DNA of 64,000 nucleotides, from assembly GCA_965637545.1 (NCBI GenBank), contig OZ281494.1, positions 26,536,001 through 26,600,000 on the forward strand. The letters are read 5' to 3'. The position numbers and the translations under genes were made by a program. This document shows, piece after piece, positions 579 through 56,021 of the stretch. Source of the DNA: Phallusia mammillata. Taxonomy: Eukaryota. Below the pieces are notes generated by a model. The model saw only the letters and a program-made list of their open reading frames with translations, ran no database searches and was not told the origin of the DNA. The first letter of the stretch is position 1. Each line of letters begins with the position of its first letter.

Positions 579-2840
579 TTAGGCTCTGCCCCAGCATTCA
601 AGTTTTCCAAGCGTATGCCATCCGAACTCGGCAGGATCACCTGCATCTCCGAAATGCATTTCACTGACAGGAAGGTCACTCTTGTTTGTCAGATAACCCT
701 CGTCGGCTGTTACGTACGATTCGGAGTTTGCATCACAGTTGCACTTTTTTTTTGTCTACGCACGTTCCTATGCAACAAAAGTTACACTTAGCTAGCTCAT
801 GACGTGCATTCAGTGGCATGAGATAAGTACCCACTTACATGTGTAACACAACAACATAATACTTGTCTTTAGCCTAATCGTTTAACCCATTTAATTATTA
901 CACCAATTCAAATTTACAGCCATTTAAATTGTTACAGTCATTTAAATTTTCCGCCAGCCAATTTTAGGACATAAATCTTGATATTCAAAGATCAACGTTG
1001 AGACCATACTAAAGACTATTTGCCAGTTTGTGCCCCTAAATATAAAATACCATTTCCCCAAAACAACCGATATTTTCAAACATTAGTTTGTGAACGTTCG
1101 ATCGATTTTTAAGACCAACCTGTCTCTCCACATGCACAGTAATTATCTCTCTCGCTTCCACCCCAGTTAAGCCTCAGTGTCCCGTTTCTTGATAACCAGG
1201 CACCACGGGGTTCGTCTTGTTTCCAGTGCAGAACGGATCCCCGGCATCGAAACTGGAAACAAAATTTGATCCTAACGTTTTGTCGAAGATATTTTTCTTG
1301 GCAATAGAGAAAAATATAAAGCAATTGGTACAATATAAAAGGTAGGAGCATGAATGGTTTTAATTAGACACCTTGAGTGGATGCCATTCGGTTTGTCATA
1401 AATGTTAAAATGTGGTTGCCCAACGATATATAGCAGCCTTAAAACAATATGTTAGTGGTTTGATCGACGCAAACTTTATTACACGACAGCATTATACATT
1501 GGGAACCAAACATGTTAAAAAAACAAAATTACCCAAAGATAAGAGACAGCAAAAAAGCTAAAATGTACTTGTATTTACAAATTGGATCCGCCCTGAAGCT
1601 CCTACCTTAATAAACTGCCTACAGTGAGCAGAGGCATCAATCAATTGTACGATTTTCCGCATGGGGACGCTGTAGGTAACTCTTCTTTTATAGCATCGAG
1701 GGTTTTCGCAATTGTTCATTTGGATTTCCTTTTCACTGTCATGGTCAATTAATGTCTTTGTTACCATCGTCCAGCTTCCGTTAGCAGTCGACACTGAACA
1801 TGACAAGTGGTTTGTGGCAAGAGATCGGCAAACTATTCAAAGTAAATGATCCGACAACTTGCACAAACTGTATATACAACGTCTAGGTATGGCGAAATGT
1901 TTTCAAGTATATTTTCGAGATGCGTTTGACATGGTAAAGTTGCAAACAACGGACAATGCGAGCAATATCAGAAAATGCAAAGAATGTTAGTTTTTTGGCT
2001 GGTTGCACAGAACAATTGAGATGACCTATATTTTACTAACCGTTAGCGATTTTGCAATATGCAAAGAATGGAATTTCCTCGCGACCTGAGGGGGAAATGA
2101 GATGATATCCCATCGTGCCGGTCACAGAGTCACATGAAGTTGGTGGATTGTTAACTACAAAACAAAACAAAACAAAAAACACAGTAGTATTTTGCACAAT
2201 CATGTACGTTTGGTGTTTTCTCAAATACCTGTGTTTTTCAGATTTTCCAATTCAGAGCGCAATTGAAGGATCTCTGCATCTGCTTGATCAGCTTCTCCCT
2301 TGTCACCCTTTGTGCCCAATTCTCCCTGTATATTTGCTATAGGTTAGAATTACCTTTAAAAAGCTTTTGGACTTTAGAAAAGGTTTTGGACTGTTGTCAC
2401 TAAATAGCAGATACTCTTTTACAATTTTATGTTTCGAGAAACTTAATTTTTTGAGCCTGCATGTCAGTGTATGGTTTACTATACGTTTTTTTTTATTACA
2501 ACAGATTTATGATGTTTCCTTTAGGGTGCTTTTCTTTCATCTATGTGCTGCATCACACAGCATTTTAATTGATGCTTTACAGCAGTAAGTACAAAGGACA
2601 AATAAAAGTATCATAGATTATATTAACCTTTTGTCCTTTTGATCCAGGATACCCTGAAGGTCCAGCTTTACCTGGAAGACCTGCCGGACCTCTTTCAGAT
2701 ACACCAACCGTTTCCGTTTGTGGCCTATCATTGCCGAAGTACTGGACAATGGTTGTACCCTTGCAGTTACTGGAAGCTTCGTTTTGAGTTGCGACTTCTT
2801 TTGTAATAATCATCAGGGACAGCACGAGAAATATTAACAT
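579..2840 (-). CDS. Paralogue A: secreted short-collagen + coiled-coil + Caspr-type fibrinogen-related domain protein (most divergent copy; one apparent 1-nt homopolymer frameshift in last exon)
   Basis: Exons (minus) 2840-2628, 2325-2229, 2154-2041, 1793-1606, 1252-1120, 767-579, all GT-AG. Signal MLIFLVLSLMIIT, 11 Gly-X-Y triplets, neck AEILQLRSELENLK, PTSC..YC exon, then DHDS..CRQFIK/FRCRGS..NWGGSERDNYCACGETG/CNCD..DEGYLTNK..GWHTLGKLECW. The A9 run at 745-753 puts the last exon out of frame (total 934 nt). Confidence 0.85.
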
Positions 2841-3900
2841 TTTGAATGTTTCGTGTCTCAACTAAAGGTTGTGAAATTTGTAGCAAATGCAAGCAATGCG
2901 CTATGTAACATAAACCGTATTACAAAATTGCTCACTGAACTTTTAACATAGACCGTGTTACAAAATCCCTCACTGCACTTAATTGGTTTTGTAACGAGAA
3001 AACACTCAACACCTTTTGCATGTTTTTTAATGATATTTGCATTGCATTCTGTGTAAAATTTACTGACTGGAACAGGTATATCAAAGTAATAAAGGCTACT
3101 ACTAATATCGTGTCTTCACTATACCTATGTTACAAATATTAATGCCTTTTTCATCAGTGTGTATAGCTGTCAAATAGTTCCTATTAGAATCCTAACATTT
3201 TTCGAAAACATTACAACCTATAGCAAGCAAATACCAGCTTACAAATCACACTGTCTTTAGCAAACCGACTTATTGAAATCGCCTGCAGATATTGAACAGT
3301 CATTGAACTTACCGATCGCTGGAGAAAAGTTATTTAAGTCCGCCCTTCGGCGTAAAAGTTAGTTTAGGTTTTTGCTATATGCTGCAAGTGAAAAAGAAAT
3401 GACTGTTTGAAAATACATCAAATTTGTAAACATAAAATAACTGCTTGGTAAAAAACATTTCCGAAAAAATGTAAGGTATAATCAAACTTAATATCACACA
3501 TATTTTTTTTTGGATTCCCAAAAGCACATTTGGCACAAAATGTTACACCCTTGATAGTAAAGAAAAAATCACGTATTACTCCCTCGTTAAGCATAATTTC
3601 CGTTTTGACAAACGACTCATTCCTGGTGGGAATGTCTCAAATTACGTAAGCTGAAGTATTTTGATTGTGACGGAAATTAAATGCCTTGGCTGTAATACAA
3701 ACGTTTTCGATACGCGTGACAAAAAATGTTTATGTTTGTGAGATACGTGGCATTTTTATTGCAATGGCAGGAGCGATCGCAAGACCGTCCTAAACATTTG
3801 GCATGAAGGCAAGTCTGCAAGTGGTTGCATATACAAACATGAAAATACGTTTTACAGATTGCACCAAGCAAACTGCGCATATAAAAAGCTGCTGTAAAAA

Positions 3901-6328
3901 ATGATTTGTTTGCTGCTAACGCTGCTGTTGGCAGCGCAAAGTGTATCACAGGATTCTTCATCTACTGGCTGCAAAGGAAGCATAATTAACCAGTATTTTG
4001 GAAGTGACCAGCATTTGATTCAGCATTCAGTTGTTCCATCAGGGCGTGAGGCACCAGGACCACCCGGAAAAAGAGGACCTATTGGCCACATGGGAACAAT
4101 TGGCCCTAAGGTAAAAACGAACAATTTATTAAATTGTTTTTGTTTTTGTGGTTGTAGATTTAACCACGGTGTTTTTAAAAAAATAATGTTTTAAAGTAAT
4201 TAAAAATCAGGAAATTTTCGTTCAAAATTATGAAACTTATTGTGCCCGTTAGTGTTTTATAACAGAAATAAAATAAACGTTTTTTTTTGCTCAACCAGCA
4301 GTAATACAACTCGCCGCCTTTTCAATGTCTCATTCGGGCGTCTTTATCTGTTGCTGTGATTGCTAATGGTTTGTGGGAAACGAGTTTTTTAGAGTCGTGA
4401 AACGTTTACGCGCGTGCTAGCACCACGAACGTAAAAAAAAACTGATACCGACTTGCCGCTATCGGTCGCTTTTACACCTCTAACACTAAAGTATTTATCA
4501 CCGTTTTATAACACTGTGTTTGTACCACTTTCCTTCCGCACACTGTGTTACATGATATAAGAAGGGTTGTATAAGGCTTTGTGCCATTTTTTTGATGAAG
4601 ACGCCTCAAATCAAAACTTTGTATGAGTTATATACAGTTGGCCGTTAAGCAAAAGAAAAGTCAAGGAAATGTGCCTGGCGACACCAGTTATGTTTAAGCT
4701 CGCGAGTTTTTCAATTTATTTTAGCGTTTACACAACTTTTGCTGGTTGCTTGGTTTTTATGTTTCCAAATAAAATTTCACTGAAAGATTTAATATACCTT
4801 ACTCGGGAACGGTGTATATTTGGCAGGGCGATCCGGGTGTAAAAGGCCAAAAAGGAGAACCTGTTCTTGCTTCGACAATTCTAGAACTTAAAAGAGCGAT
4901 AAATCGATTGGAAAATTCAGGTATTATGGAACAGATTAACGCTTCTACTTTGGACAAATACAATTGCGTTATTGCGTTTAGTAGCAGTTATATTAATCCT
5001 TAACACAATTGTACTGCGTAGTTCTGTGATGTTAACACTTTTTTTTGTCAGTAAATGCCATTGTACCAGCCACCTGCAAACACGTGGCTTTATCGCCAGG
5101 ATCTTATCCTATCTTACCCCTTGGACTTGATGGAACACCATTCTACGCCTACTGTGAAGGTCAGGTGTTACGCTTTAAAAGTTAAATTTGGATTAAATGG
5201 TATTGTGTTGCAAAACAGAAAGTCCCACTGGCGTGAGAAAGACATTGATTGGTCACGACAGCGAAACTGAAATTGCGGCTGATAATTGTGAAGCTCCCAG
5301 ATGTTACAGAAGAAAAGTAACATACGACGTCAGCATGGAAGACATTGTACGTCTTATTGATGCATCCCAGCAATGCAGACAATTTATTCAGGTATTTCTG
5401 CGAGCCAAAAAATCTGGTATTAAAATGGAAATAAGTAAAACGGAAATAACTTGTGTTCGCTTGCAAATGACACGAACATGAAAAATGGGACCCGAAAAGT
5501 TTTTTTTGCTATTATTTCTGGATACAAATCATTTTGTGTACAATACCTGGCTAACTGGATGCAGCACAAACGAACGCATAATATGTATAGATTATAGAAG
5601 GATTGTGAAAAAACTCTTTTGTTGGGAATAAATATATAGTTTTGTGCAACATGGAGCCTAATAACAGTAGTATGTTGATTTGCTATCAAATTCTTCTTAA
5701 TGTAGAGTCTTATTGTTTCATTCTGCCACCGTTAAAGAGTTTATGACAAATTTTACTGGTGTAAATATATTGCTTTCAGTTTCGATGCAGAGGCTCCCTG
5801 CTGCACCAACGTAAAGATGTTTATGGAGCTTGGTTATCAAGAAACGGAACGTTAAAACTCAACTGGGGTGGAACTAAAAAAGACTACTATTGCGCCTGCG
5901 GAGAGACTGGTATAAACCTCCATTTGTTTTTGGACCTGTAACCAATTATAGTGTTAGCTTACACAAAGATTCAGCAATTTGTGGACTTTTGTGGGCATAC
6001 TGTTATTTACATGACTTTGTCGTGATCGCTGGTCTGCATAGACGCTTTAGGGCTGATCCCAGTTGTAAATTAATGTTCTTCTTGCACTTGGGAGTGTCGA
6101 ACACTGAAAACATAATCATTTAAATAACTAAAGCTTGCAACGTTGACAGGCACTTGCATTGACAATACGCACAAGTGCAACTGCGACCAGAACGGACCAA
6201 TTGATACATCAGATGAAGGTTATCTGACAAACAAAGAAGATTTGCCAGTAACTGAAATGCATTTTGGAGACATGGCAGACAGTTCGGAGTTTGGCTGGCA
6301 TACACTCGGAAAACTTGAATGTTGGTAA
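3901..6328 (+). CDS. Paralogue B: intact 6-exon collagen/coiled-coil/Caspr-type FReD protein (297 aa)
   Basis: Exons 3901-4110, 4827-4920, 5052-5159, 5219-5391, 5780-5909, 6150-6328 (894 nt, open frame, GT-AG). Retains the PATC..FYAYC exon. Confidence 0.9.
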
Positions 6329-7451
6329 AAACAGCTTATATGCCGACGTTAAATGAACGCATCAAGTTTATCATCATCTTATACGCACAGTCAATTTTCA
6401 AACACCGTTTTTATCCTTTTCCTTACATGGCCTATATTCCCCTGTTGTACATTAGTACTGCATTACCCTTTTATTATCCGCATTTTTCTCACACGCACCC
6501 ACGCGTATCTTGTTGGTGGAACCTTAATGCTACTTTGCAAACGGGGATTTATATGATTAAGTGTTGCATTTCATAGTTGTGTTCCGCGGCACTGATACCA
6601 TACCAACCCCTTAACATTTTGTCAGTTTTAAACAATAATATAAACAAAATAAGAATTTGTTTACTGTTGCATTATCGTTTCTGTGTTGTGTATTATTTCA
6701 ATGATTGGACCGTGCATAAGAACTCGCTTTAACTTCAAACGGCATTACACTACATACTGTATATAGATTACAATCCAATGAGTGCTTGCGTGAATACAAC
6801 ATTGTGTCAGAAGTGGGATCAAACCTCAGTCTCCATTCAAGACCTATTTATTAAGTTTAACATAAACTTTAACTCAAGGAATTTCACTGAATCCACAATT
6901 CGAATCTTTAACAGATTTCAGTAAAAAATGCCACCAACCGTTACGTGAAGTTACAGGATGTAATTCAAATTTGCAGCAATGGCATTTAGAGTTAAAATTT
7001 GGAAACATGCCTATTGCCTCCATTCGTCGACTAAGTTTTGAAAACTTGAATGTACAGTGCATGCCGCTGGGCTGCTTTGTAGGTTTGCTGAAAAAAATTG
7101 CAGTGTTGCTAAAAACAGGTTTTGCAACCCTTTTGATGAACTCTATTTTAGGTCTAAAATGCAAACAAATGGATAAAATTCTGCTTGTAAGTACTTTTTA
7201 TCCTGGGGTTGTAAGTAGGACCGAAGCCGAAATACACTGTTCAATTACAAAGTATTTCAAGTTTTCAAGACTGGTCGTTCGACATTTTTAGTCAGACGTC
7301 AATGTAAATTGTAAACTCGATCAGTAGAGTTTAACCAGGTAGTTGATGTGCAGCAACAGTGGGGCCTTGCAGGATTACTGCAAACAATAACTTTTTCCGC
7401 AGTTTGAACTATCCGTACACGTAACAGATCAGTTTATAATTTATTGATGAA

Positions 7452-9630
7452 ATGGAGAAAATCATATGTTTGCTGCTAACGCTGCTGTTGTTAACTCAAT
7501 GTGCATCACAAGACTCTTCGTCCACCGGTTGTAAGGGAAGCACAATCATTCAGTATTTCGGGAGTGATCAGCATTTGACTCAACATCAGTTGCGTCCAGT
7601 TGGTCCGTCAGGTCGTGGAGCACCTGGGCCACCCGGAAAAAGAGGACCAGTTGGCCAAATGGGACCAGTCGGTTTGAAGGTTAATAAACAAAAAATAAAA
7701 ATAATACACAACACTCTTTTTAAAGATGTTATGTTAAAGATTATTTTGTGTTAATTTCACTGCAGTCACATTTTTTACTGTTTTTGTTAGGGGGATACGG
7801 GCAGCAAGGGTCAAAAAGGAGAACCTGCTCTTTCTGCGACAATCCTTGAATTGAAAAGAGCAGTTCACGAACTAGAAAATTCAGGTATTGTTAAGATTTG
7901 CAACAGGTAAGCAGTTTTAATGTATCAGCTCCAACATAGCTGCAATTTGCAGCAGAATATAAATGTCGGCTCGGAATATCTCAACTAATTTTAGATTCGG
8001 GCTTAATCGAAATTCTGCATCGAAAAATCTGCTGCCTAATCAGAATGATGGTTTTTCATTTTATTTAATTTTGTGTATGTTTTTCAGTCATGAGAATGAC
8101 ATCGATTGGCCACGACAGCGAATCTGAAATTGAAGTGAACAAATGTGAGCCTAACAGATGTTACCAAAGAACAGTAACATACAACACCAGCATGGATAAT
8201 ATAGTTCGTCTTATTAGTGCATCCCATCACTGCAGACAATTTATTAAGGTAATTGTTAAATACTTTTGTTCATTTTCATGAGGCAAATAATGATTTGTTT
8301 AAGGTTTTGCTTAATATAGAACTGTTGGATATAAAAGTTTCGTTTTTTCCTACCAAAACTATCACAAGTTTTAAACAAGTTTTACTTTAGTACCGATGTC
8401 GAGGTTCTGTGCTATTCCACAATGGAAATGATTATGCAGCTTGGGTGTCCAGGAATGGAATGCTGAAACACAACTGGGGAGGAAGTGAAAGAGAATACTA
8501 CTGCACCTGTGGAGAAACTGGTCGGGCTGCTGTTGTTTGTTTTTGGGCGTATGGGAAGCAAGTTTGAAATAGTGATGTACCGAATATTAGGTTTACCTAA
8601 TTTATTCGACCGGGCATTTTTTAAGTCAGGCATTTTTACAAAGATTCGATTTCGGGAAAGTAGGGTGTATAGCGTTACAAACGAAACTGATTTTTTTACG
8701 AACACAGTTTTAAAGCGTAAAAGGTTCCTTTCCTTGTCTACTTTAATGGACACCACACAATCTTTTAAACTTAACAATAACTTAGCGTCAACAATTACTA
8801 TGTTCAAACCATTGTTGTTTTGTACAGCCAGACAAAAAAATCAACTGTTCGTTCACAAGCTAGCAACGACAGACGAGGCAGCCACAAAACCGACGTTACT
8901 AGGATGCTAATGAAATCCAAATATTATACTAGAAAAACTTTTCGGGAAGCACATTGCTACGTGTGACGTCCTTAATGATGCGGTTGATTCGGCCGAATTG
9001 ATTTGCTTTTGGATCGAATCTAATTTAGCGAGTATAAAACTCATATGTTAAACTCAGTGGTTCTCAAAGTATGGGTCGCGACCCACACATGGGTCGCACA
9101 GGGCAAAAAAATGGGTCGCGCACACAATAGCCTTCCCACTATACTGTTTCGCACATGGCAATTGTAACGTCCTACCACGGGAAATAGGATAAGCTAATCT
9201 TGCGTTAACTGAACTTGGCCATGTGAAAGTTAGCGTTAGAGTATGAGTAAGTATTCGTACAAGGAAATAAAATGCAATGTTTGTTGTTTGAGGCTTGGGT
9301 CGTCAGGTGTTTATAAAACTCAGATTTGGGTCGCGCTCAAAAAAGTTTGAGAACCACTGTGTTAAAGCGTGCTATAGCTCGCTTTTTTAGCACTAAAAAA
9401 CGTTTGTTTCGTAATATGGAGAATAAACATATCCTTTGTTTTGCTTAGGTACATGCATCGACAACGATCACAAATGCAACTGTGATCAGAACTCAGATAC
9501 TGTAACTACATCGGACGAAGGATACCTAACAAACAAAGGTGATCTACCTGTAACTGAAATGCATTTTGGAGACAATGGGGGCGATCTGGAACGTGGTTGG
9601 CACACCCTGGGAAAACTTGAATGCTGGTGA
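7452..9630 (+). CDS. Paralogue C: intact 5-exon form (264 aa), lacks the PxxC..YC exon
   Basis: Exons 7452-7679, 7791-7884, 8088-8248, 8391-8520, 9449-9630 (795 nt, open frame). Confidence 0.9.
9055..9359. mobile_element. hAT (Buster/Charlie-like) MITE in last intron of C
   Basis: Ends CAGTGGTTCTCAAA / TTTGAGAACCACTG. Flanks tgttaaac(t) and tgttaaag are a near-match 8-bp TSD. Confidence 0.75.
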
Positions 9631-10414
9631 ATGCAATATCTAGTGATTGATTTTTCATATAAGATGTTACACAACAACAAATGCATAAAATTGTTAAAAA
9701 CCTGTACATACACTCTTCTGATCAGTTGTCTATTCCTGCTGTAACGTACTGCAATAATTTTGTAAACATCTTATAGCTTTTCTTTCCAAGTACTTTTTCG
9801 AGACACGCAATGAAAACAAATGGCCCCTTCATACGATGTGTAATACGAAATACTAGTGATTGTCATGAGTGCAAAATCATAAAGTTTCTATGCTGTGTAA
9901 TGTACTTGCGCCCTGTTTAGAAATTCATGCGCACAGAAATCAGAAAATAGTTTTTAAACCGAACTTAAAACCTGAAGTGTAAATTTATTGGACTGGTTTT
10001 ATATTGTCCTTTACTACTGCGATCGTTGCCATACAACTGTCGAACTGCGAAGTTTTTGTCTACTCCTAAACCATACTCTTTTTCTATTAGTCCCAAATTT
10101 GTCCAAATCACTGAATCATTAGATATGAATTAATACATATTTCTGATGTAAGTTAGTTGCAATCATGAATGATTCATATTAATGCTGAGACCCCAGATAT
10201 TGTAATCTTAAACTTAAGGTTGTTTGCGGTTTTAAGCATCAACCTGCACCTGTTTCTATGTGTATTATTACTCTTTGCCATGTTACTTAATTCAGGCGAT
10301 GTCGTGAACATGTCAAGTTGTTGCTTGCTCTTATATCTACGAAGTATCATCATTAAAATGCACTACCCCCCAAAAAAACTGTTTGTGCCATAGATTTTTT
10401 TCTATCCTATAGCA

Positions 10415-10837
10415 CAGCGGTTCCCAAACTGGGGTCCGCGGTCCTTTAGGGGTCCGTGAGGCAATTTTGGGGGGGACCGCGAAGCGGTTGAAGTAATTCT
10501 ATAATCTTATTTGGCGTCAGTTTGTGCCACTAAATAAGTTTAAATCAAAGTAGAATTGAGAATCGACTGTCTCCATTGCTAAACAATGGCCTTTATTGAA
10601 TGACAACTATATCAAAAATGCAATTGTTCGCGCAAAATCGTAATGTTTTTGTCCTGTTTGTGATGTCACATGCTGTCTTTGGATGATTGTTATGCGCAAT
10701 TTTGCATAACTAGCTAAAATCCTGCAATCAACTTTCATTTTTATGAAATACACATTTAGGCTTAAGGACCGCGAGCCCTCGAAATAATGGCAAAGGGACC
10801 GTTTTGAAAAAAATATGAAAAAGTTTGGGAACCACTG
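10415..10837. mobile_element. hAT MITE
   Basis: TIR CAGCGGTTCCCAAACT / AGTTTGGGAACCACTG; TSD ctatagca/ctatagcg (7/8). A related inverted copy lies at 21147-21496. Confidence 0.8.
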
Positions 10838-12312: not shown

Positions 12313-14449
12313 ATGATCTTTGCGTTGATAATGCTTTTGTTAATAAGTCAAAGTGCATCCCATGACTCTTCAGCCACCGGTTGCAAGGGAAGCACAATTA
12401 ACCAGTATTTTGGAAGTGACCAGCATTTGTTTCAGCATTCAGTTGGACCATCAGGGCGTGGAGCACCTGGGCCACCCGGAAAAAGAGGACCTGTTGGCCA
12501 TATCGGATTAATCGGTCCTAAGGTAAAAACAAAAATTATTAAAAAAATCCACAACGATCCACGAAATAACTGTGGATTAGGCTGTGTTCTATTATACGGA
12601 ACGACTAGGGCTTGTTCTGCAAAGATTTCATTGGCCCTCAAGGGTTATTCCTGACTACCCTTGTACACTTGAATGTTGTGTTTCTTTAAACCGGTAGTTG
12701 ATTTTCATGCTTGACAGGGTGATGGGGGCAACAAAGGTCAAAAAGGCGAACCAGCTCCTGATTCAACCATCATGGAATTGAAACAAGCCCTTAACCGTTT
12801 GGAAAATTCAAGTAGTTTTTTAATGCATTAATTTATCTATTTCAAATACAGAGACACTCATAAACGTTGCCGTGCAAACCAAAACAAGCTTTAGAAATAA
12901 TTTTTATCTTGTTTTTTTTACATCTCACTTTCTAACTTCAATAATTTTTATATTAGATTCGTAACCATCGTGAACCACGTGTTTTAAGAATCGTGGGAGA
13001 AAATTCATTTTTCCGTTTACAAACTAATAACTAAGCACTAAATCAGTGGTTCTTAAAATGGGTGATACTGTCCGCCTCTGGACGTTTGTGATAATGAATA
13101 GGGCTCTGGACGTAATTAAGGTGCTGCAATAAATCTTGGCAGACAAAACATGTGAAATTACATGTAAAAAGTTAAAACTTTAAATACTCATTTTGTACAT
13201 TTTTCAGTTACGTTGATTGGCCACGACAGCGAACATGAAATTACAGTTAATAAATGTGAACCTGATAGATGTTACAGAAGGACAGTTACATACACCACCA
13301 GCATGGAAAACATTATTCGTCTCATTAATGCATCACAACACTGCAGACAATTTATCCAGGTATTTGTCAATTACTTTTGTTAATTTTAAAGATGAACATA
13401 TATTCATAACTTGGATCAGCCCTGAAGCGTCTATAAGCAGACCAGCGATCACGGCACACTCATATGTAAATCACAGTACGCTAGGCCTATTGAAGGCGCC
13501 ATCCCGAATCAGCCGGTCACCAAGCATTCACCACTATATGGCAGGGCATAGGCTAGAACAATCTAGCCTGCGGTGGGATTCTAACCCAGGACAGAAGTCT
13601 AGGCTATGGCAAGGCATCTAGCCTAGACTCCTCCCACCACAGGCTAGATTTTTCTAGCCTATGTCTTGCCATTTGGTGGTGAATGCTTGGTGACCGGCTA
13701 GTGCGGTATGGCGCCTTCAATGGGCCTAGCGTACTGTGATTTTGATTTTACAGAAGCAATTACTTCTTGATTTAGGTTATGCTGAATATAGAAATGTTGT
13801 GTAGGCCTATATATGTAGGCCTATATATATCCCTTTTTTTCTATCAATAAATAAACAGTGTACAATGGCCAAAGGAAAGTATTATTATTAATGCATAGTT
13901 GACTGACCAAATATGTTTTATTTCAGTACCGATGTCGAGGTTCTATGCTATTCAAAAATGGAAATGATTTCGCAGGTTGGGTGTCCAGAAATGGAGTGAT
14001 AAAACACAACTGGGGCGGAAGTGAAACAGAATACTATTGCGCCTGTGGAAAAACTGGTCAGTTCCTTATTGTATATTTTTAGACTTGTGAGCAGCTACTA
14101 GTTTGTATCTTAGGCAGTTCTGTGTAGTTTGAATTATTTTAAACACTTGATTGTGGCTAAGCATGTGAATGTTCGCGTCATTTGTAAAGCGTTTGGGACT
14201 GTTAAAAAAGTTTGCTTATTGTAATGTTTACCTATTGCAGAGAATTCAAAAATCTTTTTTTTTTCAGGTACATGCATTGACAATGATTACAAATGCAACT
14301 GCGATCAGAACTCAGATACTGTGAGTACATCAGACGAAGGATACCTAACAAACAAAGATGATCTACCAGTAACTGAAATGCATTTCGGAGACACTGGAGG
14401 CGATCCGGAACGTGGTAGGCACACCCTGGGAAAACTTGAATGCTGGTGA
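12313..14449 (+). CDS. Paralogue D: intact 5-exon form (255 aa)
   Basis: Exons 12313-12522, 12718-12811, 13208-13359, 13927-14056, 14268-14449 (768 nt, open frame). The otherwise invariant GWHTLG is GRHTLG here. Confidence 0.88.
13472..13738. mobile_element. Fold-back MITE with CAC..GTG ends (EnSpm/CACTA-like) in intron of D
   Basis: Almost wholly palindromic: cacagtacgctaggcctattgaaggcgccat ... atggcgccttcaatgggcctagcgtactgtg, flanked by AT on both sides. Confidence 0.65.
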
Positions 14450-19900: not shown

Positions 19901-19967
19901 ATTTGGAGACCTTGGGGACAGTGGAGAGTATGGTTGGCACACTTTGGGGAAACTTGAATGTTGGTAA
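16936..19967 (+). CDS. Paralogue E: intact 5-exon form (251 aa)
   Basis: Exons 16936-17133, 17635-17728, 17998-18149, 19218-19347, 19786-19967 (756 nt, open frame). Confidence 0.9.
18235..18763. mobile_element. hAT (Charlie-like) MITE in intron of E
   Basis: TIR CAGGGGCGGGCAAC / GTTGCCCGCCCCTG, subterminal GGCCCGC repeats, perfect TSD gtttagta. Confidence 0.9.
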
Positions 19968-45290: not shown

Positions 45291-46542
45291 ATGATTTGTC
45301 TGATGCTTACACTGCTGCTTATAAGTCAAAGTGTATCTCAAGACTTGTCATCAACTGGTTGCAAGGGAAGTACAATTATTCAGTATTTCGGGAGTGATCA
45401 GCAATTGACTCAACATCAGTTGCATCCAGTTAGTCCATCAGGTCGCGGAGCACCTGGAGCACCCGGAAAAAGAGGACCCGCTGGCCAAGTGGGACTAATT
45501 GGTCCAAAGATAAATACTTTTTAGGGAGAAAGCTGTACAGTGTTTGTTATTGTTTTTACGGAACCTTTGCAACGGCAGCGTTGTCTTTTAGTTAAAAACA
45601 CGAATCTTGTAAGTTTAAGTAACGGTAGCCTATATTTAAGATAATATTGTAACGCAAGTGGCATTTTGCTTTTATTGTGACTTGGACACGAGTCCATATT
45701 TTTAATTAGAGTTTAGAAACACATTTTGCGAAGTACAATTATTTCTAATCAGAATATTTAGCCTTGTTCGTTTTCTTGATTTAGATGTACCTTTATGGTG
45801 ATTTTGTGGGATTAAAAACGACAGGGTTTGTTCATAGTACGTTTTAGCACATACTTAACCACCGTCACTGTATGAAAAGGATAAAAATCATGTTTAGAGA
45901 ATGCCAACCTTTCACTTCATGACGGTGACAAAGGTTAATTGTAGCTCGTGTGTAAAGGCGTGATTAGAACTGAATACGGACCTTAAATTGGAAACCTGGT
46001 CCGACTAAGCACTTTAATTGCTAACAACGCCACAAATTTGTACGTAGCGTGTCAAACTACACACTGCAAAATGTTATTGGAAGCATGCGTGTCTTGTAGA
46101 TACTCTAATGGCTGACGTTTCCACTTCCAAAACATTTCAAGCTTTGAAAAAAGTATTTTTGTATGTGGTTTTGATTTGAAACCATTGATTAATTATGAGA
46201 TACATTCACAAACGTATACAAAATTTTGCCACCGACAATAAAGTTTTTATCATATTTTTGAATAGGGTGAACTAGGCAGCAAGGGCCAAAAAGGAGAACC
46301 TGCGTCTGTTTCTACAATCAGGGAATTAAAAAAGACAATTTCCCGTTTGGAACGCTCTGGTATTTAGGATTGCTAGCATTTTGCTGTTTTGTGTATCAGT
46401 TACAGGCCCACAAAGTTTAATTTTTTGTCTTGTTTAGTAAATGCTGTGTCCACCAATTGCAATGAAGCTGCATTGTCGTCAGGATATTATCTTATTTCAC
46501 CTCTGGGGCTTCAGGGAATCCACTTCTACGTTTACTGCAAGG
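45291..46542 (+). pseudogene. Paralogue H: 3'-truncated pseudogene (exons 1-3 only)
   Basis: Exons 45291-45509 (donor GT mutated to AT: ccaaag|ataaat, stop four codons later), 46266-46359, 46438-46542. Homology to I ends near 46682 (gtaagctaacttcc). Confidence 0.85.
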
Positions 46543-47728
46543 GTAAAAACATCAAAAAAAGTTAAAAAAATATTAAATACCTTCAAATAAACCGGAAATA
46601 AACCCAGCTAAATATTTAAAAATTTGCGTGAACTATTGTGTCACTGGTTGATACCACTTTAATGCAGGTAAGCTAACTTCCTAACTGAGCTACAAAAGCT
46701 TATTGGTGAACCCGCCGAAAGTCGAATGACATGAGCTTTTAACGAATGGCGTAAACGGCAATTAAGTTTTAATCAAGTAATTGATAAACATTTTTTTTCT
46801 GAAGTTTTTAAAAATCTACTTTCCATTCATGTTTTATCTGCTGTCGGTTTAACAAAATCATAGATTTATGAGCCAGCTGTGATTTCCAGCCGCCTTTCTC
46901 TTTTTAACACAAATTCACTGTTGTGCACTTAAACCAGGGGTGGGCAAACTTTTCAGTGCAAGGGCCGCATTCAAAAGTTCTTAATCTTATCGGGCCGCAT
47001 AGTATTTCACCAACGGCCGCCAATTGCTTGCTTGTTTTTGTTTTAAAATAACTGGTGCAAAGAATTTGATTTGCATCATATATTTATACCATTTAAAGCC
47101 ACCTAAAATGCTCAGATTAATAATTTCTAACTTGGTGCATAAGTTTAGCTAAACGATGCTCACTGTTTATGATGTCATAATGTGTATTGTGACGATTGCG
47201 GTGCCTGTTTTTTCGCATTGTTTGCGCACAATAAGCGGATGAAAAGCCTGACGCATATAGTTACTAGGCACAAACTTGTCTCCGAGGCCGCAGGTTGTGC
47301 ACGCCTGATCTAGCTCAAAATATTGACATAGCATATTTTCAGCTATGTGCAAATAAGTTTGTTGTCACTTGATTGGACAAACATGGGTTGAAATTGAAAC
47401 GCTACATTTGTAATTGTTTCAAACTAAACTAGCATTTAAACAACCACGTTTTTGGTTAATAAATTCCTTGCGCCAACATTAAACAAGGCGAGCCGCTTTT
47501 AGCATCCATCTTTAGGTCTTGTGCGGGTCTGTGTTAACGATTCTGAAGCCGTTTTTTTTGTCCGTTTGCAACTGCAACGACCTAAACTTGATCCAAAGTG
47601 ACCAAAGTTTTGGCGTCAAAAGTGCAAATTCGGCTGTATTTGAAAACGTGAATCGCTTTTACTTTTATCGAACGAAGAAAAAAAGACCCTGACAAAAAAG
47701 GGTACTGATTTTATTTAAAGGATAAATC

Positions 47729-47914
47729 AGGGGTTCTTAAACAGGGCTGCACGCACCCCCAAGGGATGCGAGAACTGTTCCTAGGGAGTGCGGGGGTGCT
47801 ACATCATCAAAGTTGGTTAGGTCTATTCTATATAAATACAAAAACCCAGGGGGTGCGAAAATTGGTTGGTTATTTGAAATGAGTGCAGCAAGGAAAAAAG
47901 GTTAAGAACCACTG
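47729..47914. mobile_element. hAT MITE upstream of J (second copy ~57097-57283)
   Basis: Ends CAGGGGTTCTTAA / TTAAGAACCACTG. TSD gtataaac is perfect in the second copy and diverged (ggataaat) on the left of this one. Confidence 0.75.
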
Positions 47915-48323
47915 GTATAAACTATAGTCCGGAATTTCCCAGACATATCTGGAATTTCTGTGAAAAATCTATGCCCGACAATAAAGTTATAATTAACCAA
48001 GTTTGAAAATTAAACAATTCATACCATTTTAAAGCACCTACATTTTGAAAACAAATCAAGCACTCGTGATCACAAGGTTCACTAAGAGGTTATTTTGTAA
48101 CCTTTTTCACACGGTAACAGCAGCCTTGTGTTTCTTGCTAAAACACAGGTATCAGGTCGACACAAATGCTTGTGACATGTTAGTCGGCGGATGTATATCA
48201 GACAAGGTACGTTATGTTTAAATCGAAAATCGAATGAAATAAATTTCTTCTCAGTGTCATTAGCGCAGCATAGAGAGTGGTAACAGTGTACCCTCCCATT
48301 TACTTCGAAAATTGTCCAACAAA

Positions 48324-51300
48324 ATGTCGTGGACTTTTTTCTTGGCTTTTTTGATCTGTATGAGAACCAGTCATGGATTCGAAGGTAAAACGGATATATT
48401 TTTTAAAACTATATAAATATTTGTGCTTTTGCAAAAAGATTTTGGCATAATTCGATGACTAAATTTTGTAAGCATTGGTGACGCAACATTTACTTTTATT
48501 TTTTATTATTTTACTCACTGTTGACTTAGTGGGCGCCTTATTAAGTCGTGTGTGCAATTTAAAGCAGGACTGGTGATTGATAACAATTTCTCGAAATATA
48601 TATATTTTTTTGGTTGCAGTGACGTGCGAAACCGAGTTTTCTGAATTGAAACATTCCATCACAAAACTTCTGTGCCCTGATAACTGCTGGAGGCAACATT
48701 CAACTTTGTGTGGTGACCGTGTTTACTCCAGGGGTCCGGTGTGTCTAGCTGCTATGCAGGACCAATGGATTGACGGTAGGTGACATCGTTCGTTTAGCTT
48801 TTACCCTGCCTTTTAAGTATTCTACCATGGCTGTCCTAAAAAGGAAATACGGATACCTCTTTTATCCATACAACTAAATTATTGTGTAAACTAATAGCTT
48901 GTTGTTTTTGAGTTTCTCCTCATGTTGATATGTGGTTTTGAGCGGGTCCAACTTTTAGACTTAAAACTGGCCTGATTCCAAAAATATAAGCCCGAAACCT
49001 ACCAAACTCAAACATTTAACAAATTCTAACTATTCCCATACTCCCGTGATTCCCGCTTAAACCAAACTAAGTATTATGACAAAACATGCATTGTTGAGAT
49101 GTAAAAAGCAACAAATCTGCCATTTTTTGCATAGTTTGTAATCAGGCATAGTTTGAAATTAGAAATTTTTGCTAAGTTGAAAATCATGCATCTAAACGTT
49201 GTTTTCAAAAAACTCCTAGGCCCATACCCGAAACGGTGGTTGTCGGTGGCGCGGGTTACAACTCGGACACAAAGACACACAAACAAATAGCATAACTAAG
49301 TGGACGTTCTTGTCCTTTTATTCCTCACTTTGTAGGTGGTGGTGGACCAGTGGTTGTTTTTCGAAATCCAAATAGCAATCGCAATCATTACAGTGGAGGA
49401 AATCGAAATGCAGTGACGAGTAATTCATGTTCTGCCTCTGGAAGCTCCTACTCCTTTGAAAGTAAGTGATAAAATCCAAACATCCGTAACGTTAAATTTG
49501 GCTAACAAGTTTTGAAATTGCCTTTGACAAAAATGTTGCGTTCTTCAAACACAGAACCCTAATACGAATCCCGATCAGTGTTTTAGCGTTGTAATATGGG
49601 TTACTGAGATTGGCCCACAATGCGGGAGAAAAGGTGACGGAACCAATATTATCATAAAATTATTGAACACATCGGTATGTGGTGTTTCTATTTATAATAA
49701 TGTCGGCAGTCAATGGTCCAGAGGTGTAGGCATAAGCCACACCCTTCTTGCGTAGATCATGTGAACAATTTCTGTCATATAACAACGATTTTCGACTTTT
49801 TGTCGAGTAATTAAGTAATAACTTAACACACACAAAATCTTAGGGAAAAAAGGTGCTTGGTTTTAACGCAAACATAACTTGTTTAGTGACATGCTCGACT
49901 CGGGGTGACTCGGCATCATCAGTCACTAGTGTATGGTGTCCAGCTGCTTGCGGAAATGAACCGGTCTACGGGTCGGTAATGTACAGTGTCAAGTCATCGG
50001 TATGTAGAGCTGCAATACATGCTGGAAAAATTTCAGGTAAGAGAATCAAGCTATCGCAAAACCATCTGCTGCGGTTTTGGATGTCGAAAAACTTTAGGGC
50101 TTTGGTATCAACGCTTGATTCGCCCAACGCACGAAGCAAAAATTTTCTTCGTAATAGTAGGCTGCTTTAGAATTTGTTGCAAAGCATGTTTTCTGTAAAA
50201 CAACACTGCGCATAACGCTTGTGCTTAACACTGTCATGTGTAAAACTCCTACCAAAAACGTTGTAACGTCAACAATTAGACCTGATCTTGATTTACGTAA
50301 ACCTAAAAAAGAGTCTCAAAGCCAAATTAAACCCTTCTCAAACCCGGCTTCAGTTTGAATAAAACAGTTGATTTGTTTTTGACTTTACGCCAGGCAACAT
50401 TTGTGTTTTTGGTCAAACTAACTTTCGGGTTATAAAGTGGCATTTCCTCCTAATCTTTTGTCATGCACTGCCGAGTGCTTCCGCTGAAAATAATTATGGC
50501 AAAAACAGTGGTTTGTTTTCGCATTAATTTGGTTAATCATAAGACCTACTTTATTATCAGTATTTGGGGGTGTTTGACCTTCTTAAATTGACCTAACAAC
50601 ATGTGTGTCATTTTTGTTCCTTTCAGAAGGAGGAGGATTCGTCAGATTCTTTGCAGCTAAAAGTCAACATGTTTTTATCGGTTCGTTATCAAATGGAATT
50701 GTAAGCAATTCTTCTGAAGAGATTGGTTCTGCGTTTAGCTTTACAAGTAAGATATGAATACTAACACAGCCGTGTTAAATGGGAACAAGCCCCTAGCAAA
50801 CTTTTTAGCATATTTTCTCAATTTTATAGAAGAGTCGTGTTTGATGGCGTCTGGAGACAAAAGACCAGGCCTGTAATTAGTAAACTCTGTTCCAAAGTGA
50901 AAGTTAAATCGGCAAAACATTAACACTCTGTTTGAAAATTAATTTTTAAAGCCCAACCAAACAATACCATTCTCATTTGACACATCAAGCGGGTTTAAAC
51001 GCTGGTCGCTTTTTGTACAAAACCCGATTCTATTCTGTTTGTACGTGGTTTAAGAGCAGTGGTTCTCAAACCTTTTTATTGTCGGGGCCAAATGATATTT
51101 TTTAAGTGTGTAGGGAGCCGCAAAAAAAACACGAAACCTTGAGAAAATCACTAAAGAAGATGACTTTGAAAGCTAAAATAGCAATGTTTGGTGGATTTCT
51201 GAGGTCTGGTGCGAGCCGCAAAATAAGTAGTTGGGAGCCGCATGCGGCCCCGAAAACCGAGTTTGAGAACCACTGTTTAAGAGCAAGTTCCAACCATTTT

Positions 51301-53053
51301 AAAAGATGCCTAAAATCTAACGTTGTATGCCGTTGCTCGTTTACCAGCCGTAACATTGCATTGTTTGAATTTTGCAGATAAAGACGAATGTGAAGGTAAT
51401 CCATGCATGCATGGCGGCACTTGTGTGAACGGACTAGAGGAGCATTTTTGCCTGTGCAGGCCACTTTATACAGGAAAAAAATGCGAAATAGGTGTGTTAA
51501 ACAAATCGTGTTGGTAAAACTGGCGTACGATTGTAAAATTGCAAAACATTTGGTGCCTTTTTAGGTTAAAACTATGTGATAAATAATTCTAAACCGTACG
51601 CATTCATTTAGGTGGCAATATATTCAAATTAAACTAAAATTAACTTAATCACTAGCTTAAACCCAAGTCGAAATAACCTTTTCGCTAACTTATCATAAAA
51701 GTTATGGTTCTAAGCGAATCAAAACGAATATCAGTTGCGATCATCTCCCATCTCAGGCCCTAATGATTTGAATCCATAATAAGACGGAATGAACAAAAAG
51801 TTTAATTATTGTAATACTATGATCCCTGCCAAAAAAATTTTTTTTTGTGTAACATATTTTTAAGCAGTTAGAATGACGTCGATTGGGCACGACAGCGAAT
51901 ATGAAATTGAGGCAGGTAACTGCGAACCAGCAAGATGTTACAAAAGAATCGTAACATACAACACCAGCATGGAAAACATTGTTCGTCTTATTAGTTCATC
52001 TCAACACTGCAGACAATTCATGAAGGTATTAAGTAAAATAATTTATATGCCCTCTCACAATATATATGCCTGCATGCGTTTCATGCTACGGTTGGAATGA
52101 CATCTTGAGGTGACATATAGCTAAACATATCAATTATTCTTTCAGGTTAAACCTTAAAACGCCTACCAGCAAGCAAAACTTGCAAGGAAATGGCAGAAAA
52201 AAACACTGCTATCTTTTTACTAATATTGTCATTTTGATACTGAGACAATTTCAAATAATTAAAAACCTACAATTAAGTTTTGATTCTGGCATGATTGGAA
52301 GATTAATGGCACCCTAATATTACGTAATTGGATACCCAGCACTTTTCAAAAGTTTCAAGGGTGAAAAAAGGTTTGTTTTATTTTGTTCAAAATGTGTGCA
52401 AAACCAATTTAACGATGTCTTATAAGCAAAAAGTCACAAGCTATGTATAAAACGGGCAAAAGGTGTAAAAAACGCCCCAAAAACTTTCACGAACATTTTT
52501 GTTTATAGTACCGGTGCCGAGGTTCCGTTCTATTCTGGAATGGAGATTTTTATGCTGCTTGGGTGTCTAGAAACGGAACCCTGAAATACAACTGGGGTGG
52601 AAGTGAAAGAAACTACTATTGTGCGTGTGGAGAAACTGGTGAGTCCGAGTCAACTATTTAGGCCTGCAGAAAATCACTTTCGTTATATATTGTGCTTTTC
52701 CCGCGTTTTTTCATTCTTCACATCCGTCTTTTGCTTGCACTAAAGCATGCTGACTACCTTGCAGTGATAAACACACGTCGAATCAATTTTTAACCCACTT
52801 AAACATTCCAATTTCGTTCTAGTGCCTAGTTTTTGTTTTTGTACTGATTAAATTTATATTTTTCTTTAATGTAGGAACATGCATCGACAATAGTTACAAA
52901 TGTAACTGCGACCAGAATTCAAAGTATATAACTACATCGGATGAAGGATACCTGACAAACAAAGATGATCTACCAGTAACTGAAATGCATTTTGGAGACC
53001 TTAGCACTGGCGAGTATGGTTGGCACTCTCTGGGAAAACTTGAATGCTGGTGA
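48324..53053 (+). CDS. Gene J1: chimeric secreted protein signal-LCCL-LCCL-EGF-Caspr-type FReD (397 aa)
   Basis: Exons 48324-48384 (MSWTFFLAFLICMRTSHG), 48620-48775 + 49336-49461 (LCCL1: TC..CPDNC..GDRVY..VCLAA / GGPVVV..YSGGNRNAV), 49887-50036 + 50627-50746 (LCCL2: CPAAC..VYGSVMYSVKSSVCRAAIHAGKI / GGFV..FIGSLSNGIVS), 51378-51491 (EGF DECEGNPCMHGGTCVN..CLCRPLYTGKKCE), 51868-52025, 52509-52638, 52875-53053. 1194 nt, open frame, all GT-AG. Confidence 0.88.
51057..51275. mobile_element. hAT MITE in intron of J1 (second copy ~60421-60639)
   Basis: CAGTGGTTCTCAAAC / GTTTGAGAACCACTG, perfect TSD tttaagag. Confidence 0.88.
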
Positions 53054-53816
53054 AGGCATTATACTCACAGTAATGTTTGATTTTGTTGCATGAGTTTGTT
53101 GTCATTTTATAAACACACGTTTTTAGTTGGCTCATATCATAGTGTTGCTGTAAATTAAAGACGGGACTCTGTTCCCCTTTTCCATTGAAAATACGCTATT
53201 TTACAACCGACGCACACGCCTATTAATTAAAAAGATTCAAAGTGCCCAAAATGTGGCCTGTAGTTAATCGATTTGCAAAAAAGGCGATAAAACAATTATC
53301 TGTTTGTTGTATCTGTATTTCAAGCTTTCGCATTCAACGTTTATCTTTCTTTCAACGTTTACAGTATAAGACGGTCACACATTTGAAGCCATTTGTTTTA
53401 TAATAAGACACAATACTACTCTACACTGGCAAAATTAAAGCTCTTTTTTGTACTGTGATTTTGTTGGTCTTGATAAACTTGTATTTTTTTGCTTTTTATT
53501 GTAACAAATCATTGCTGTATGCCTCTCGTCATGCAAGTAGCATTTGCTTCAAATAATTAGTTCTGACGCAAAATTGATAGATTTATACACACAGTAAAGG
53601 CACGAAATCGTTCTGTGCGTGACAATGCTACAAATATCCTTGCCTGGTTTCCAATCGTTTTTGCCATTTGAACAAGTTAGGTATTTCAGACTACTTTGCC
53701 GAGTCGCAAACGTAGTGACAAAAGTTTGAGAAGCATTTATTGCAACTGTTTAAACAAAGATATACCTTACTGTATACACAACAACAACAATGTATTTCAA
53801 AGTTGTTTCGAAAAAC

Positions 53817-56021
53817 ATGATTTGTCTGCCGCTTACACTACTGTTGATAAGTGAAAGAAAATCTCAAGACTCGTCATCCACTGGTTGCAAGGGAAGTACA
53901 ATTATTCAGTATTTTGGGAGTGATTAGCATTTGACTCAACATCAGTTGCATCCAGTTGGTCCGTCAGGTCGTGGAGCACCTGGGTCACCCGGAAAAAGAG
54001 GACCTGTTGGCCAAGTGGGACCAATCGGTCCAAAGGTGCATACTTTTTAGGAAGAAAATCTGTACGGTGTGTTTGTTATTGTTTTTACGGAACCTTTGCA
54101 AGTGCAGCGTTGTCCTTTAGTTAAAAAATGAATCATGTGAGTTTAAGTAACGATATTTAGGATAATATAGTAACGCAAGTTGCATTTTGCCCATACCGTG
54201 ACTTGACACTAGTCCAAGTTTTTAATAAGAGTTTAAAGACACATTTTGATAGGCTCTGATTAGCTAACAATTTGTACGTGTAGTATGCTAAACTACACAC
54301 TTAAAGTGATAATAGTAGCATGCTTTGTAGATACTCTAATGGCTGACGTTTCCACTTCCAAAACGTTGTTTTTCAAGCTTTGAAAAAAGTATTTAAAACT
54401 GCGGCTTTGATTTGAAACCATTGATGCTGGGATACATTCAAGAATGTATGCAAAATGTTGCTACCCGCAATAAAGTTTTCATCTTATGTTTCAATAGGGC
54501 GAACCAGGCAGCAAAGGCCAAAAGGGAGAACCTGCGTCTGTTTCTACAATCAGGGAATTAAGAAACACAATTTCCCGCTTGGAACGCTCTGGTATTTTAT
54601 GATTGCTGGCATTTTTCTGTTTTGTGTATATCAGTTTTTCCACAAAGTTTAATTTTTTGCTTGTTTAGTAAATGCTGCGCCCACCAATTGCAATGAAGCT
54701 GCAGTGTCGTCAGGATATTATCTTATTTCACCTCTGGGGCTTCAGGGAATCCCCTTCTACGTTTACTGCAAAGGTAAAAAATTTAGTTGTTAAATACCTT
54801 CAAATGAACCGGAAATAAACCAAGCTACTTAATTGCGTATATTATTACGTTACTGATTTGTATCACTTTAATGCAAGTAAGCTAACTTCCTTCGTTTCAA
54901 TAATCGTCACACTTAATTTACTTAGCTGGTTCTAGCGTTTCATCTGTGAAACGAGCATCGATTGGCCACGACAGTGAATCTGAAATTGCGACACAAAAAT
55001 GCGAACCACATAGATGTTACAGAAGGACAGTAACATACGACATAAGCATGGAAAATATTGTTCGCCTCTCAACACTGCAGACAATATATTAAGGTAACTG
55101 GTAAATAAGTAAATTCAGTAAGGCCGGCCCTTATATGGATGGCATAACACCAAATCAAGCTGATCTCCCAAGCATTTTCATATAGCAAGTGCGGTGGCAC
55201 TCTAACCCACGACAAGAGCCTTTTCGGGGATCGCGTTTTACCAACTGAGCCACGCAGGCTCATTGGCGAGCCCACCGAAAGTCCAATCACATGCGCGTTA
55301 AACGAATGACGTAAACAGCAATCAGGTATTAATCAAGTAATGTTTAACAAATCGTAGGTTTTTTGAGCCGGCTTTGATTTCCTGGCGTCTTTCTTCTTAA
55401 TCGCCACAAACACACTGTTATCCATCGTTAAACCATCCAATGGCTTAACATTTTGCATGTTAATCCGATTACTACGTTGATGGTTCATAATATCTACGTT
55501 AAGTTTTCAAAAATTGAAACCAGTTAATCTGTTTAGTATCGGTGTAAAGGATCTCATCTATGCAATACCAAACATGTTTACGCAGCCTGGGTGTCAAGAA
55601 ACGGAATACTGAAATACAACTGGGGTGGAAGTGAGAGAGACAGCTATTGCGCGTGTGGGGAAACCGGTAAGTCTATGGTCTATTTCTTTCATTGAATTTA
55701 AATGTATTTTTTGTCGAGTTGACACACAGTATATATGTCACCCACAATTCCTCTGCACCTTAACAAAATAAACACGTTTTTAATTTCGGATTTGTTTTTA
55801 CTAATTGCTTTGAACAAAATCATTCTTTATTTGATCAAGGAACGTGCATCGACAATAACTACAAATGTAACTGTGATAAAAATTCAAATGATATAACTAC
55901 TTCGGATGAAGGATACCTGACAAACAAAGATGATCTACCAGTAACTGAAATGCATTTCGGAGACACTGGGGGCAGTGGCGAGCGTGGTTGGCACACTCTG
56001 GGAAAACTTGAATGCTGGTGA
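53817..56021 (+). pseudogene. Paralogue I: 6-exon form, pseudogene
   Basis: Exons 53817-54035 (TAG at 53925, codon 37, CAG in paralogues), 54498-54591, 54669-54773, 54926-55093 (11-nt deletion frameshift near 55068), 55537-55666, 55840-56021. Confidence 0.88.

Follow-up and report, generated by a model that had tools for sequence, protein, structure and literature searches.

Tandem genes for predicted collagen-stalked proteins with a CNTNAP-type head in the tunicate Phallusia mammillata

What kind of product is encoded by a tandem array of small genes whose chains are laid out like those of ficolins, collectins and C1q and end in a head of the type found in contactin-associated proteins (CNTNAPs; Caspr, neurexin IV)? 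This question is raised by a 64,000-nucleotide stretch of the genome of Phallusia mammillata (GenBank assembly GCA_965637545.1, contig OZ281494.1, positions 26,536,001–26,600,000 of the forward strand), which is referred to below as the window and whose positions are counted from its first letter. The array is a lineage-specific tandem expansion that occupies 579–64000, is local, is under purifying selection and includes several decaying members. Each intact chain consists of a signal peptide, one N-terminal Cys, 10–11 Gly-X-Y triplets, a neck of two to three heptads and a disulfide-rich head of 150–190 residues. We regard as established the genes and their structure, the transcription and splicing of one of them (G1), the action of purifying selection, and both the fold of the head and its kinship. 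The reading to which we give slightly better than even credence is that the array encodes small secreted collagen-stalked proteins whose most likely product is a trimer displaying three binding heads.

Structure of the array and of gene G1

The window DNA is AT-rich (GC 0.36–0.39) and its genes carry introns. A six-frame motif scan showed that the motifs GHDS, NWGG, CNCD and KLECW and Gly-X-Y runs recur along it, on the plus strand except for the left-end copy, which lies on the minus strand. The 5′ exons of each copy were located by tblastn with exon peptides, and gene models were built with a spliced protein-to-genome aligner that uses GT..AG introns in three phases and frameshift states. 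A reading of this DNA made from its sequence alone (the sequence-only reading) had quoted a set of head and stalk motifs, all of which were recovered by the scan and the exon tblastn, and had proposed ten paralogues of 250–310 amino acids at 579–56021. The family is real and the array is present there, but only five copies are intact (297, 264, 255, 251 and 260 amino acids), others being damaged and one head belonging to an LCCL-EGF gene; the array also continues to 64000 through a tandem duplication that is 99.25% identical.

The best documented copy is G1, the features of which are as follows.

3901–6328, plus strand: gene G1, intact, 297 amino acids, confirmed by RNA, with a 3′ untranslated region to ~6637
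3901–4110, 4827–4920, 5052–5159 (extra head exon), 5219–5391, 5780–5909 and 6150–6328, plus strand: exons of G1, from RNA joints
3901–3951, plus strand: residues 1–17, hydrophobic leader MICLLLTLLLAAQSVSQ resembling a signal peptide, as judged by eye
3970–3978, plus strand: Cys-Lys-Gly (CKG, residues 24–26), with C24 a candidate for an interchain disulfide
After CKG, plus strand: linker IINQYFGSDQHLIQHSV, from the sequence
4057–4110, plus strand: first part of the collagen, six Gly-X-Y triplets, the exon ending in phase 0 after a Y-position Lys
4827–4920, plus strand: junction exon, with four Gly-X-Y triplets (4827–4862) followed by the heptad neck VLASTILELKRAINRLENS (4863–4920)

RNA contigs were placed on positions 3800–9700; they derive from four public runs for this organism, which belong to three studies. 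A 1319-nt contig matches G1 without a mismatch from the 5′ untranslated region to ~6637 and contains five GT..AG joints, four of which are backed by shorter contigs from the other runs. The RNA joints agree with the G1 model at four introns and corrected the fifth, giving an exon at 5052–5159 and a next exon starting at 5219. G1 is a transcribed and spliced gene of 297 codons. Its sequence, together with the alignment of the paralogues, bears out the proposed layout of signal, N-terminal Cys, short collagen, neck and globular head.

A single exon encodes the signal, CKG, the linker and the first six triplets. A split of this exon by a 57–60-nt “intron” between CKG and the collagen was considered and rejected; the exon was kept whole because most paralogues have no GT at that site and all indels there have lengths divisible by 3 (9 and 21 nt in the linker). 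The collagen of G1 comprises ten uninterrupted Gly-X-Y triplets (G53–P82; eleven in most paralogues), and the intron within it is in phase 0, between intact triplets. The neck (residues 83–101) carries I/L/V/L at the a and d positions, and the heptad pattern of the family reads STILELKRAxxxLENS. The head of G1 extends to residue 297, has 12 Cys and carries KLECW at its end; heads in the array have 10 or 12 Cys.

Fold and kinship of the head

The head was modelled on a Ciona relative (P0009, residues 94–291, 198 residues) using AlphaFold2 and a 76-sequence head profile (A2), which gave a mean predicted local distance difference score (pLDDT) of 96.3 and a predicted template-modelling score (pTM) of 0.90. 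In the ESM Atlas, this model superposes on a true chordate CNTNAP cluster (“contactin-associated protein-like 5”; Laminin_G in 100% and EGF in 87%) with a template-modelling score (TM) of 0.91 and a root-mean-square deviation (rmsd) of 1.8 Å over 192 of the 198 residues, both sides being predicted models. Among solved structures, the full-length matches are the C-propeptides of procollagens I and III only: Foldseek, run on the PDB, ranks C-propeptides of procollagen III or I in each of its first 17 places (E 3e-8 to 3e-6, TM 0.55–0.62), and in a VIA-align comparison with 48,161 representative chains procollagen I (5K31_A) reaches Z 15.2 with an rmsd of 3.6 Å over 180 of 198 residues, the next match having Z 7.0. 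Fibrinogen and angiopoietin domains match partially (Foldseek TM 0.27–0.29 over ~125 columns), and canonical fibrinogen domains are absent from the VIA-align top 50. These models indicate that the head is a CNTNAP-type domain and that this domain type has the fold of the fibrillar collagen C-propeptide (COLFI) rather than the canonical fibrinogen fold. The assignment of the head to the CNTNAP/Caspr type by the sequence-only reading thus agrees with the superposition and with automatic names at NCBI, the kinship with COLFI, which had been called distant, proves stronger than supposed, and the heads stand apart from canonical ficolin and fibrinogen domains (TM 0.28, partial). The label “ficolin-like” suits the layout but not the head. 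The domain is widespread and has no Pfam model of its own, and it is labelled “fibrinogen-like” in CNTNAPs, yet has a C-propeptide fold; in a literature search that lay mostly outside subscription journals, no paper was found stating that the CNTNAP domain has this fold.

At the sequence level, no Pfam model covers the head, the first ~50 residues of which match COLFI or Fibrinogen_C weakly; Fibrinogen_C is matched in a few relatives, at profile positions 3–47 or 2–55 of 221 only. The COLFI model PF01410 is matched above its cut-off by the relatives P0036 (67.7 bits) and P0001 (44.9 bits), the nearest collagen-type relatives fall below the threshold (P0033, with 25.1 bits against a cut-off of 26.2) or give no match, and single exons of the window genes, which are short pieces, give none. 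Against PDB sequences, the A2 profile retrieves fibrinogen-related chains and procollagen C-propeptides (E 2e-7 to 1e-4) over the first ~55 residues only, with a weak second stretch on COL1A1 at “...S..C.Q.IKY.C..S”. Searches of single head exons against Pfam, of the last-exon profile against PDB sequences and of one exon in the ESM Atlas feature search returned nothing because the pieces were too short. A region search with a 1383-residue relative retrieved Xlink-CUB-SRCR proteins and cnidarian and mollusc proteins and no CNTNAP; since this search depends on shared 5-residue words, the missing CNTNAPs are not evidence against the kinship.

The C-propeptide fold would also suit a different product. 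The array proteins might be mini-procollagens, a reading that we regard as unlikely but as a serious rival, in which the neck and head would act like a C-propeptide, selecting and registering three chains and nucleating the helix from its C-terminal end; the head may then be removed to leave a mature short structural collagen of the tunic, the matrix or a mucus net, and the paralogues may allow heterotrimers. Besides the solved-structure matches and the COLFI scores of P0036 and P0001, this reading gains from the coiled-coil neck, which stands at the position of the C-propeptide stalk, and from the phase-0 intron between intact collagen triplets, which is the rule in fibrillar collagen genes. 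The family consensus, however, keeps only the equivalents of Cys1 and Cys4 of the C-propeptide; Cys2 and Cys3, which from published C-propeptide structures we take to form the interchain disulfides, are absent. The motif IDPNQGC..D, the calcium site in those same structures, is replaced in window genes by ILPLGLDG, ISPSGREE or ISPLGLQG and is missing from G2–G6 together with its whole subdomain. In addition, a far closer match to the head is the CNTNAP domain, which works in monomeric multidomain proteins and tandem arrays, and no BMP1-type Ala/Gly-Asp cleavage site is visible by eye in the neck.

The distribution of the head among animals was surveyed with a last-exon profile (alignment A1) searched against 1.84 billion cluster representatives, which yielded 883 clusters at E <= 1e-3 and 222 at E <= 1e-10, from cnidarians to vertebrates. 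A short collagen run precedes the head in 19 of the best 150, in chains of 250–430 residues, with 6–13 triplets in 18 of the 19 and 27 in one. The named collagen-stalked relatives are all tunicates (Ciona intestinalis, Styela clava and Clavelina lepadiformis), the rest being unnamed contigs of ~1 kb. Tunicate genes of this kind are already present in NCBI under automatic names, namely “contactin-associated protein-like 1/4/5”, “neurexin-4-like” and “EGF and laminin G domain-containing protein-like”. No description of collagen-stalked proteins with this head was found in the literature search mentioned above. COLFI domains outside fibrillar collagens are already known (PMC3308698, PMC5353611). 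Elsewhere, single or tandem heads are combined with Ig, LamG/EGF, EGF arrays, C-type lectin, F5/8C and SUEL domains, and further with CUB-Xlink-SRCR, Sushi, C1q, Kunitz and LCCL domains. One such combination, an uncharacterised protein of 1100–1800 residues with Xlink, CUB and SRCR domains and two heads (P0023, P0006, P0010, P0049 and relatives), is found in sharks, bichir, sturgeon, gar, eel, salamander and frogs, with no mammal or bird among the matches listed. The gene for the Ciona relative P0009 is compact (1.9 kb; locus L001, Ciona intestinalis AP043577.1, 3263300–3285181) and lies between an inward-rectifier K+ channel gene and a helix–loop–helix gene, with no tandem array within ±10 kb.

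Paralogues, selection and local history

The four other intact collagen-type genes are arranged downstream of G1.

7452–9630, plus strand: G2, intact, 264 amino acids, no extra head exon; exons 7452–7679, 7791–7884, 8088–8248, 8391–8520 and 9449–9630
12313–14449, plus strand: G3, intact, 255 amino acids; exons 12313–12522, 12718–12811, 13208–13359, 13927–14056 and 14268–14449
16936–19967, plus strand: G4, intact, 251 amino acids; exons 16936–17133, 17635–17728, 17998–18149, 19218–19347 and 19786–19967
29512–31718, plus strand: G6, intact, 260 amino acids; exons 29512–29730, 30186–30279, 30517–30677, 31172–31301 and 31540–31718

These four and G1 (251–297 amino acids) have complete frames and canonical splice sites and keep all cysteines. 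Micro-exons that appeared in models of G2–G6 were discarded as an artefact of the aligner, arising when the reference held residues that G2–G6 lack, and the simpler models were preferred.

Two subtypes of head are present in the array. The extra head exon, found in G0, G1, G7a and G8 and not in G2–G6, encodes the first ~36 residues of the head with the motif PTxC...GxYxI.P...PFxxYC, and two Cys go with its absence. In the ESM Atlas, cnidarian head-only clusters of 165–169 residues, themselves predicted models, match residues 38–198 of the head model only. Judged by these models, the cnidarian forms without the first ~37 residues correspond to the subtype without the extra exon, and since they are modelled with the same fold, that subtype is plausible.

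In pairwise comparisons of G1, G2, G3, G4 and G6 by the Nei-Gojobori method (synonymous divergence, dS, 0.15–1.6), the ratio of nonsynonymous to synonymous divergence (dN/dS) is 0.06–0.45 in leader, collagen, neck and head and ~0.2 overall; in the head it is 0.1–0.45, the same as in the stalk. By this measure the five intact genes give no indication of diversifying selection, and the head shows no excess. In a tree with tunicate and other relatives, the window heads form one clade (88/92 support), within which the pairs G0+G1 and G2+G3 are supported; the expansion is therefore local. The nearest database cluster representatives are 42–46% identical over the full length.

These results bear on the role proposed by the sequence-only reading, that of soluble oligomeric pattern-recognition proteins resembling ficolins, collectins or C1q, in which a Caspr-type head would bind microbes or glycans. 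We consider this defence role doubtful. It would accord with the collectin- and ficolin-like layout, with a lineage-specific tandem expansion, which is common for immune genes, and with the joining of the head to C-type lectin, SUEL, F5/8C, SRCR and C1q domains in other animals. Nothing in the head, however, matches the P subdomain of fibrinogen, which holds the ligand site of ficolins: the sequence alignment is confined to the first ~55 residues and the structural match is partial. The low dN/dS, with head and stalk alike, also speaks against it, and we know of no lectin activity of the CNTNAP domain. A weak lead in favour of the defence role is that markers of the Styela clava endostyle transcriptome include a “contactin-associated protein 4”, a possible member of the family, beside intelectins and mucin (PMC9953650). 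On the wider proposal, which we rate as improbable, tunicates would have a further class of collagen-stalked recognition proteins beside collectins, ficolins and C1q, with a Caspr-type COLFI-fold domain as the head. The accompanying claim that the head is one not normally credited with such a role is half true, because fibrillar procollagens, too, natively carry a COLFI-fold domain behind their collagen helix, so that COLFI-fold relatives do cap collagen helices.

The remaining collagen-type copies are damaged or incomplete.

579–2840, minus strand: G0, with extra head exon; exons 2840–2628, 2325–2229, 2154–2041, 1793–1606, 1252–1120 and 767–579
24712–28011, plus strand: G5, a pseudogene with several lesions
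45291–46542, plus strand: G7a, 5′ exons only (signal/CKG/collagen exon, junction exon and extra head exon), no head exons of its own
53817–56021, plus strand: G8, collagen-type with extra head exon, a pseudogene

G0 is intact but for a +1 frameshift needed inside an A9 run (~757–749), which could be an assembly error; behind the YC encoded by its extra exon it retains a fibrinogen-like “ANGSWTMV”, and it ends in ...KLECWGRA. G5 has a 1-nt deletion in the junction exon, a 4-nt insertion in the last exon and a Cys-to-Tyr change in YYYACG, and its exon 1 is interrupted just after TGCAAG by an insertion of ~480 nt (~24786–25261) that resembles a miniature inverted-repeat transposable element, with terminal and internal inverted repeats and rich in TTCGGCCGAA. 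G8 has an in-frame TAG in exon 1 (~53924–53926) and an 11-nt deletion in the GHDS exon (~55066), and the exon-1 donor of G7a reads AAG|AT. In G7a, G8 and G9 only, a GT follows GGAA, which creates a potential 60-nt GT..AG intron (53896–53955 in G8); splicing of this stretch would excise the linker, together with the TAG that interrupts G8, without shifting the reading frame, so that its origin may be a case of intron creation.

With such disabling changes in G5, G8, G7a and possibly G0, and with no RNA contig for G2 in the runs examined, the array could be mostly dead DNA in which decaying duplicates accompany a residual transcription of G1. This is very improbable: the five intact copies retain their frames, splice sites and cysteines, dN/dS stays far below 1 throughout the chain, correctly spliced G1 RNA comes from runs of all 3 studies, and orthologous families persist in three other tunicate orders.

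The right part of the array contains a different gene and a recent duplication.

48324–53053, plus strand: G7b, a different gene with a signal exon, LCCL, LCCL, EGF and head exons (51868–52025, 52509–52638 and 52875–53053)
57043–64000, plus strand: repeat of 47675–54641 (99.25% identity), the second unit of a ~9.37-kb tandem duplication

The domains of G7b were recognised by Pfam (LCCL E 4.5e-5, LCCL 1.3e-8, EGF 9.4e-9). Every junction read in G7b is in phase 1, the same as the neck-to-head junction of the collagen-type genes, its head differs from that of G6 with dS 0.155, and it sits just downstream of the headless remnant G7a; the arrangement looks as if LCCL-EGF exons had captured the head of G7. 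A single gene spanning 45291–53050 (G7a plus the head at 51868–53050) was rejected on finding the LCCL and EGF exons between them. The second duplication copy holds a second LCCL-type head (61231–62413) in a copy of the LCCL gene (~57692–62416) and, from 63179, the start of a copy of G8 that runs out of the window. Both copies carry the in-frame TAG of G8, so the duplication, which is very recent, is later than the formation of the pseudogene. Within 64 kb, genes of the cluster have arisen and decayed, a subdomain exon has been lost and a head has apparently passed to an LCCL-EGF gene.

Two further observations concern repeats in the window. A BEL/Pao-type long terminal repeat retrotransposon with long open frames occupies 37677–43336 on the plus strand, where GC rises to 0.43–0.48; the Pfam domains recognised in it are DUF5641, the zinc-binding and core domains of integrase and a Pao retrotransposon peptidase (3.8e-41). 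Three short intronic stretches of G1 and G2 (6021–6063, 9054–9103 and 9314–9364) coincide with high-depth RNA contigs whose two ends run into unrelated sequence; such stretches are probably dispersed repeats transcribed elsewhere.

Proposed product and known systems

For the proteins of the array, secretion, trimerisation, oligomerisation and any binding are what we infer from these features; trimerisation is suggested by the heptad neck and the Gly-X-Y triplets as well as by analogy with both collectins and procollagens. The neck of the Ciona relative is a 21-residue helix in a full-length model, in which the collagen stretch is disordered, as would be anticipated when only one chain is modelled. 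Three chains would be aligned by the neck together with the collagen segment, and the N-terminal Cys would join chains, or would join trimers. The three heads, shown together, would act as a multivalent binding unit outside the cell, whether in matrix, in mucus or in a body fluid, and their partner would be conserved rather than fast-evolving. Because the head occurs singly or in tandem with many other domains, it can be expected to fold and act without being the core of a trimer, which fits a binding role. The head as a displayed binding module is rated above the head as a trimerisation core, because the interchain Cys of procollagen and, in the window, the calcium-site motif are absent and the domain works in monomeric or tandem contexts.

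Several observations weigh against a secreted trimer with displayed heads. A run of 10–11 triplets with few imino acids would give a marginal triple helix, the signal peptide was assigned by eye only, and the three-dimensional model is that of a Ciona relative, 46–57% identical in the head, and not of a window protein. RNA support extends to G1 only and G2 has no contig in the four runs, although contigs cannot prove absence. Damage in about half of the array copies means that some of the family is in decay.

If the trimer model is correct, a soluble trimer of 250–300-residue chains would be a convenient handle on what the domain binds and would bear on the biology of CNTNAPs. Should the recognition-class proposal hold, a ligand-binding role would follow for a widespread metazoan domain, including the “fibrinogen-like” domain of CNTNAPs, and could be tested on a small soluble protein. 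Database names such as contactin-associated protein-like, neurexin-4-like and EGFLAM-like invite wrong functional readings; an ascidian endostyle study treated what may be such a gene as neuronal.

Among known systems, the CTHRC1 family also comprises small secreted proteins with ~12 Gly-X-Y triplets, a conserved C-terminal globular domain and multiple invertebrate paralogues, and its C-terminal domain has been reported to be most like C1q/NC1 and less like COLFI (PMC7058181), whereas the array heads are CNTNAP-type domains of the COLFI fold and gave no C1q match. Ficolins, collectins and C1q share with the array proteins the order of signal peptide, N-terminal Cys, short collagen, coiled-coil neck and C-terminal globular head; the head of the array proteins, in contrast, is not a canonical fibrinogen-related, C-type lectin or C1q domain, and the ligand-binding subdomain of ficolins has no counterpart in it. 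The procollagen C-propeptide (COLFI, PF01410; PDB 5K31 and 4AE2) has the same fold over the whole head and the same place after collagen and a short coiled coil, and sequence comparison still reveals the N-terminal subdomain and the “...S..C.Q.IKY.C..S” strand. The array heads differ from it in their low identity (13–18%), in the loss of the interchain Cys2 and Cys3 and the calcium-site motif, in the additional disulfide-rich motifs NWGG, YCACG.TGTC and CNCD, and in a subtype without the N-terminal subdomain. Fibrillar collagens are further distinguished by a long fibril-forming helix, the main helix having ~338 triplets as compared with 10–11 in the window genes. The closest counterpart of the head, by model superposition and by NCBI automatic names, is the “fibrinogen-like” (FBG) domain of CNTNAP/Caspr/neurexin IV, which is of the same domain type. 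In CNTNAPs, which are single-pass membrane proteins of ~1300 residues, this domain is one of many, whereas in the array it forms the C-terminal head of a predicted secreted chain of 250–300 residues, behind a collagen stalk.

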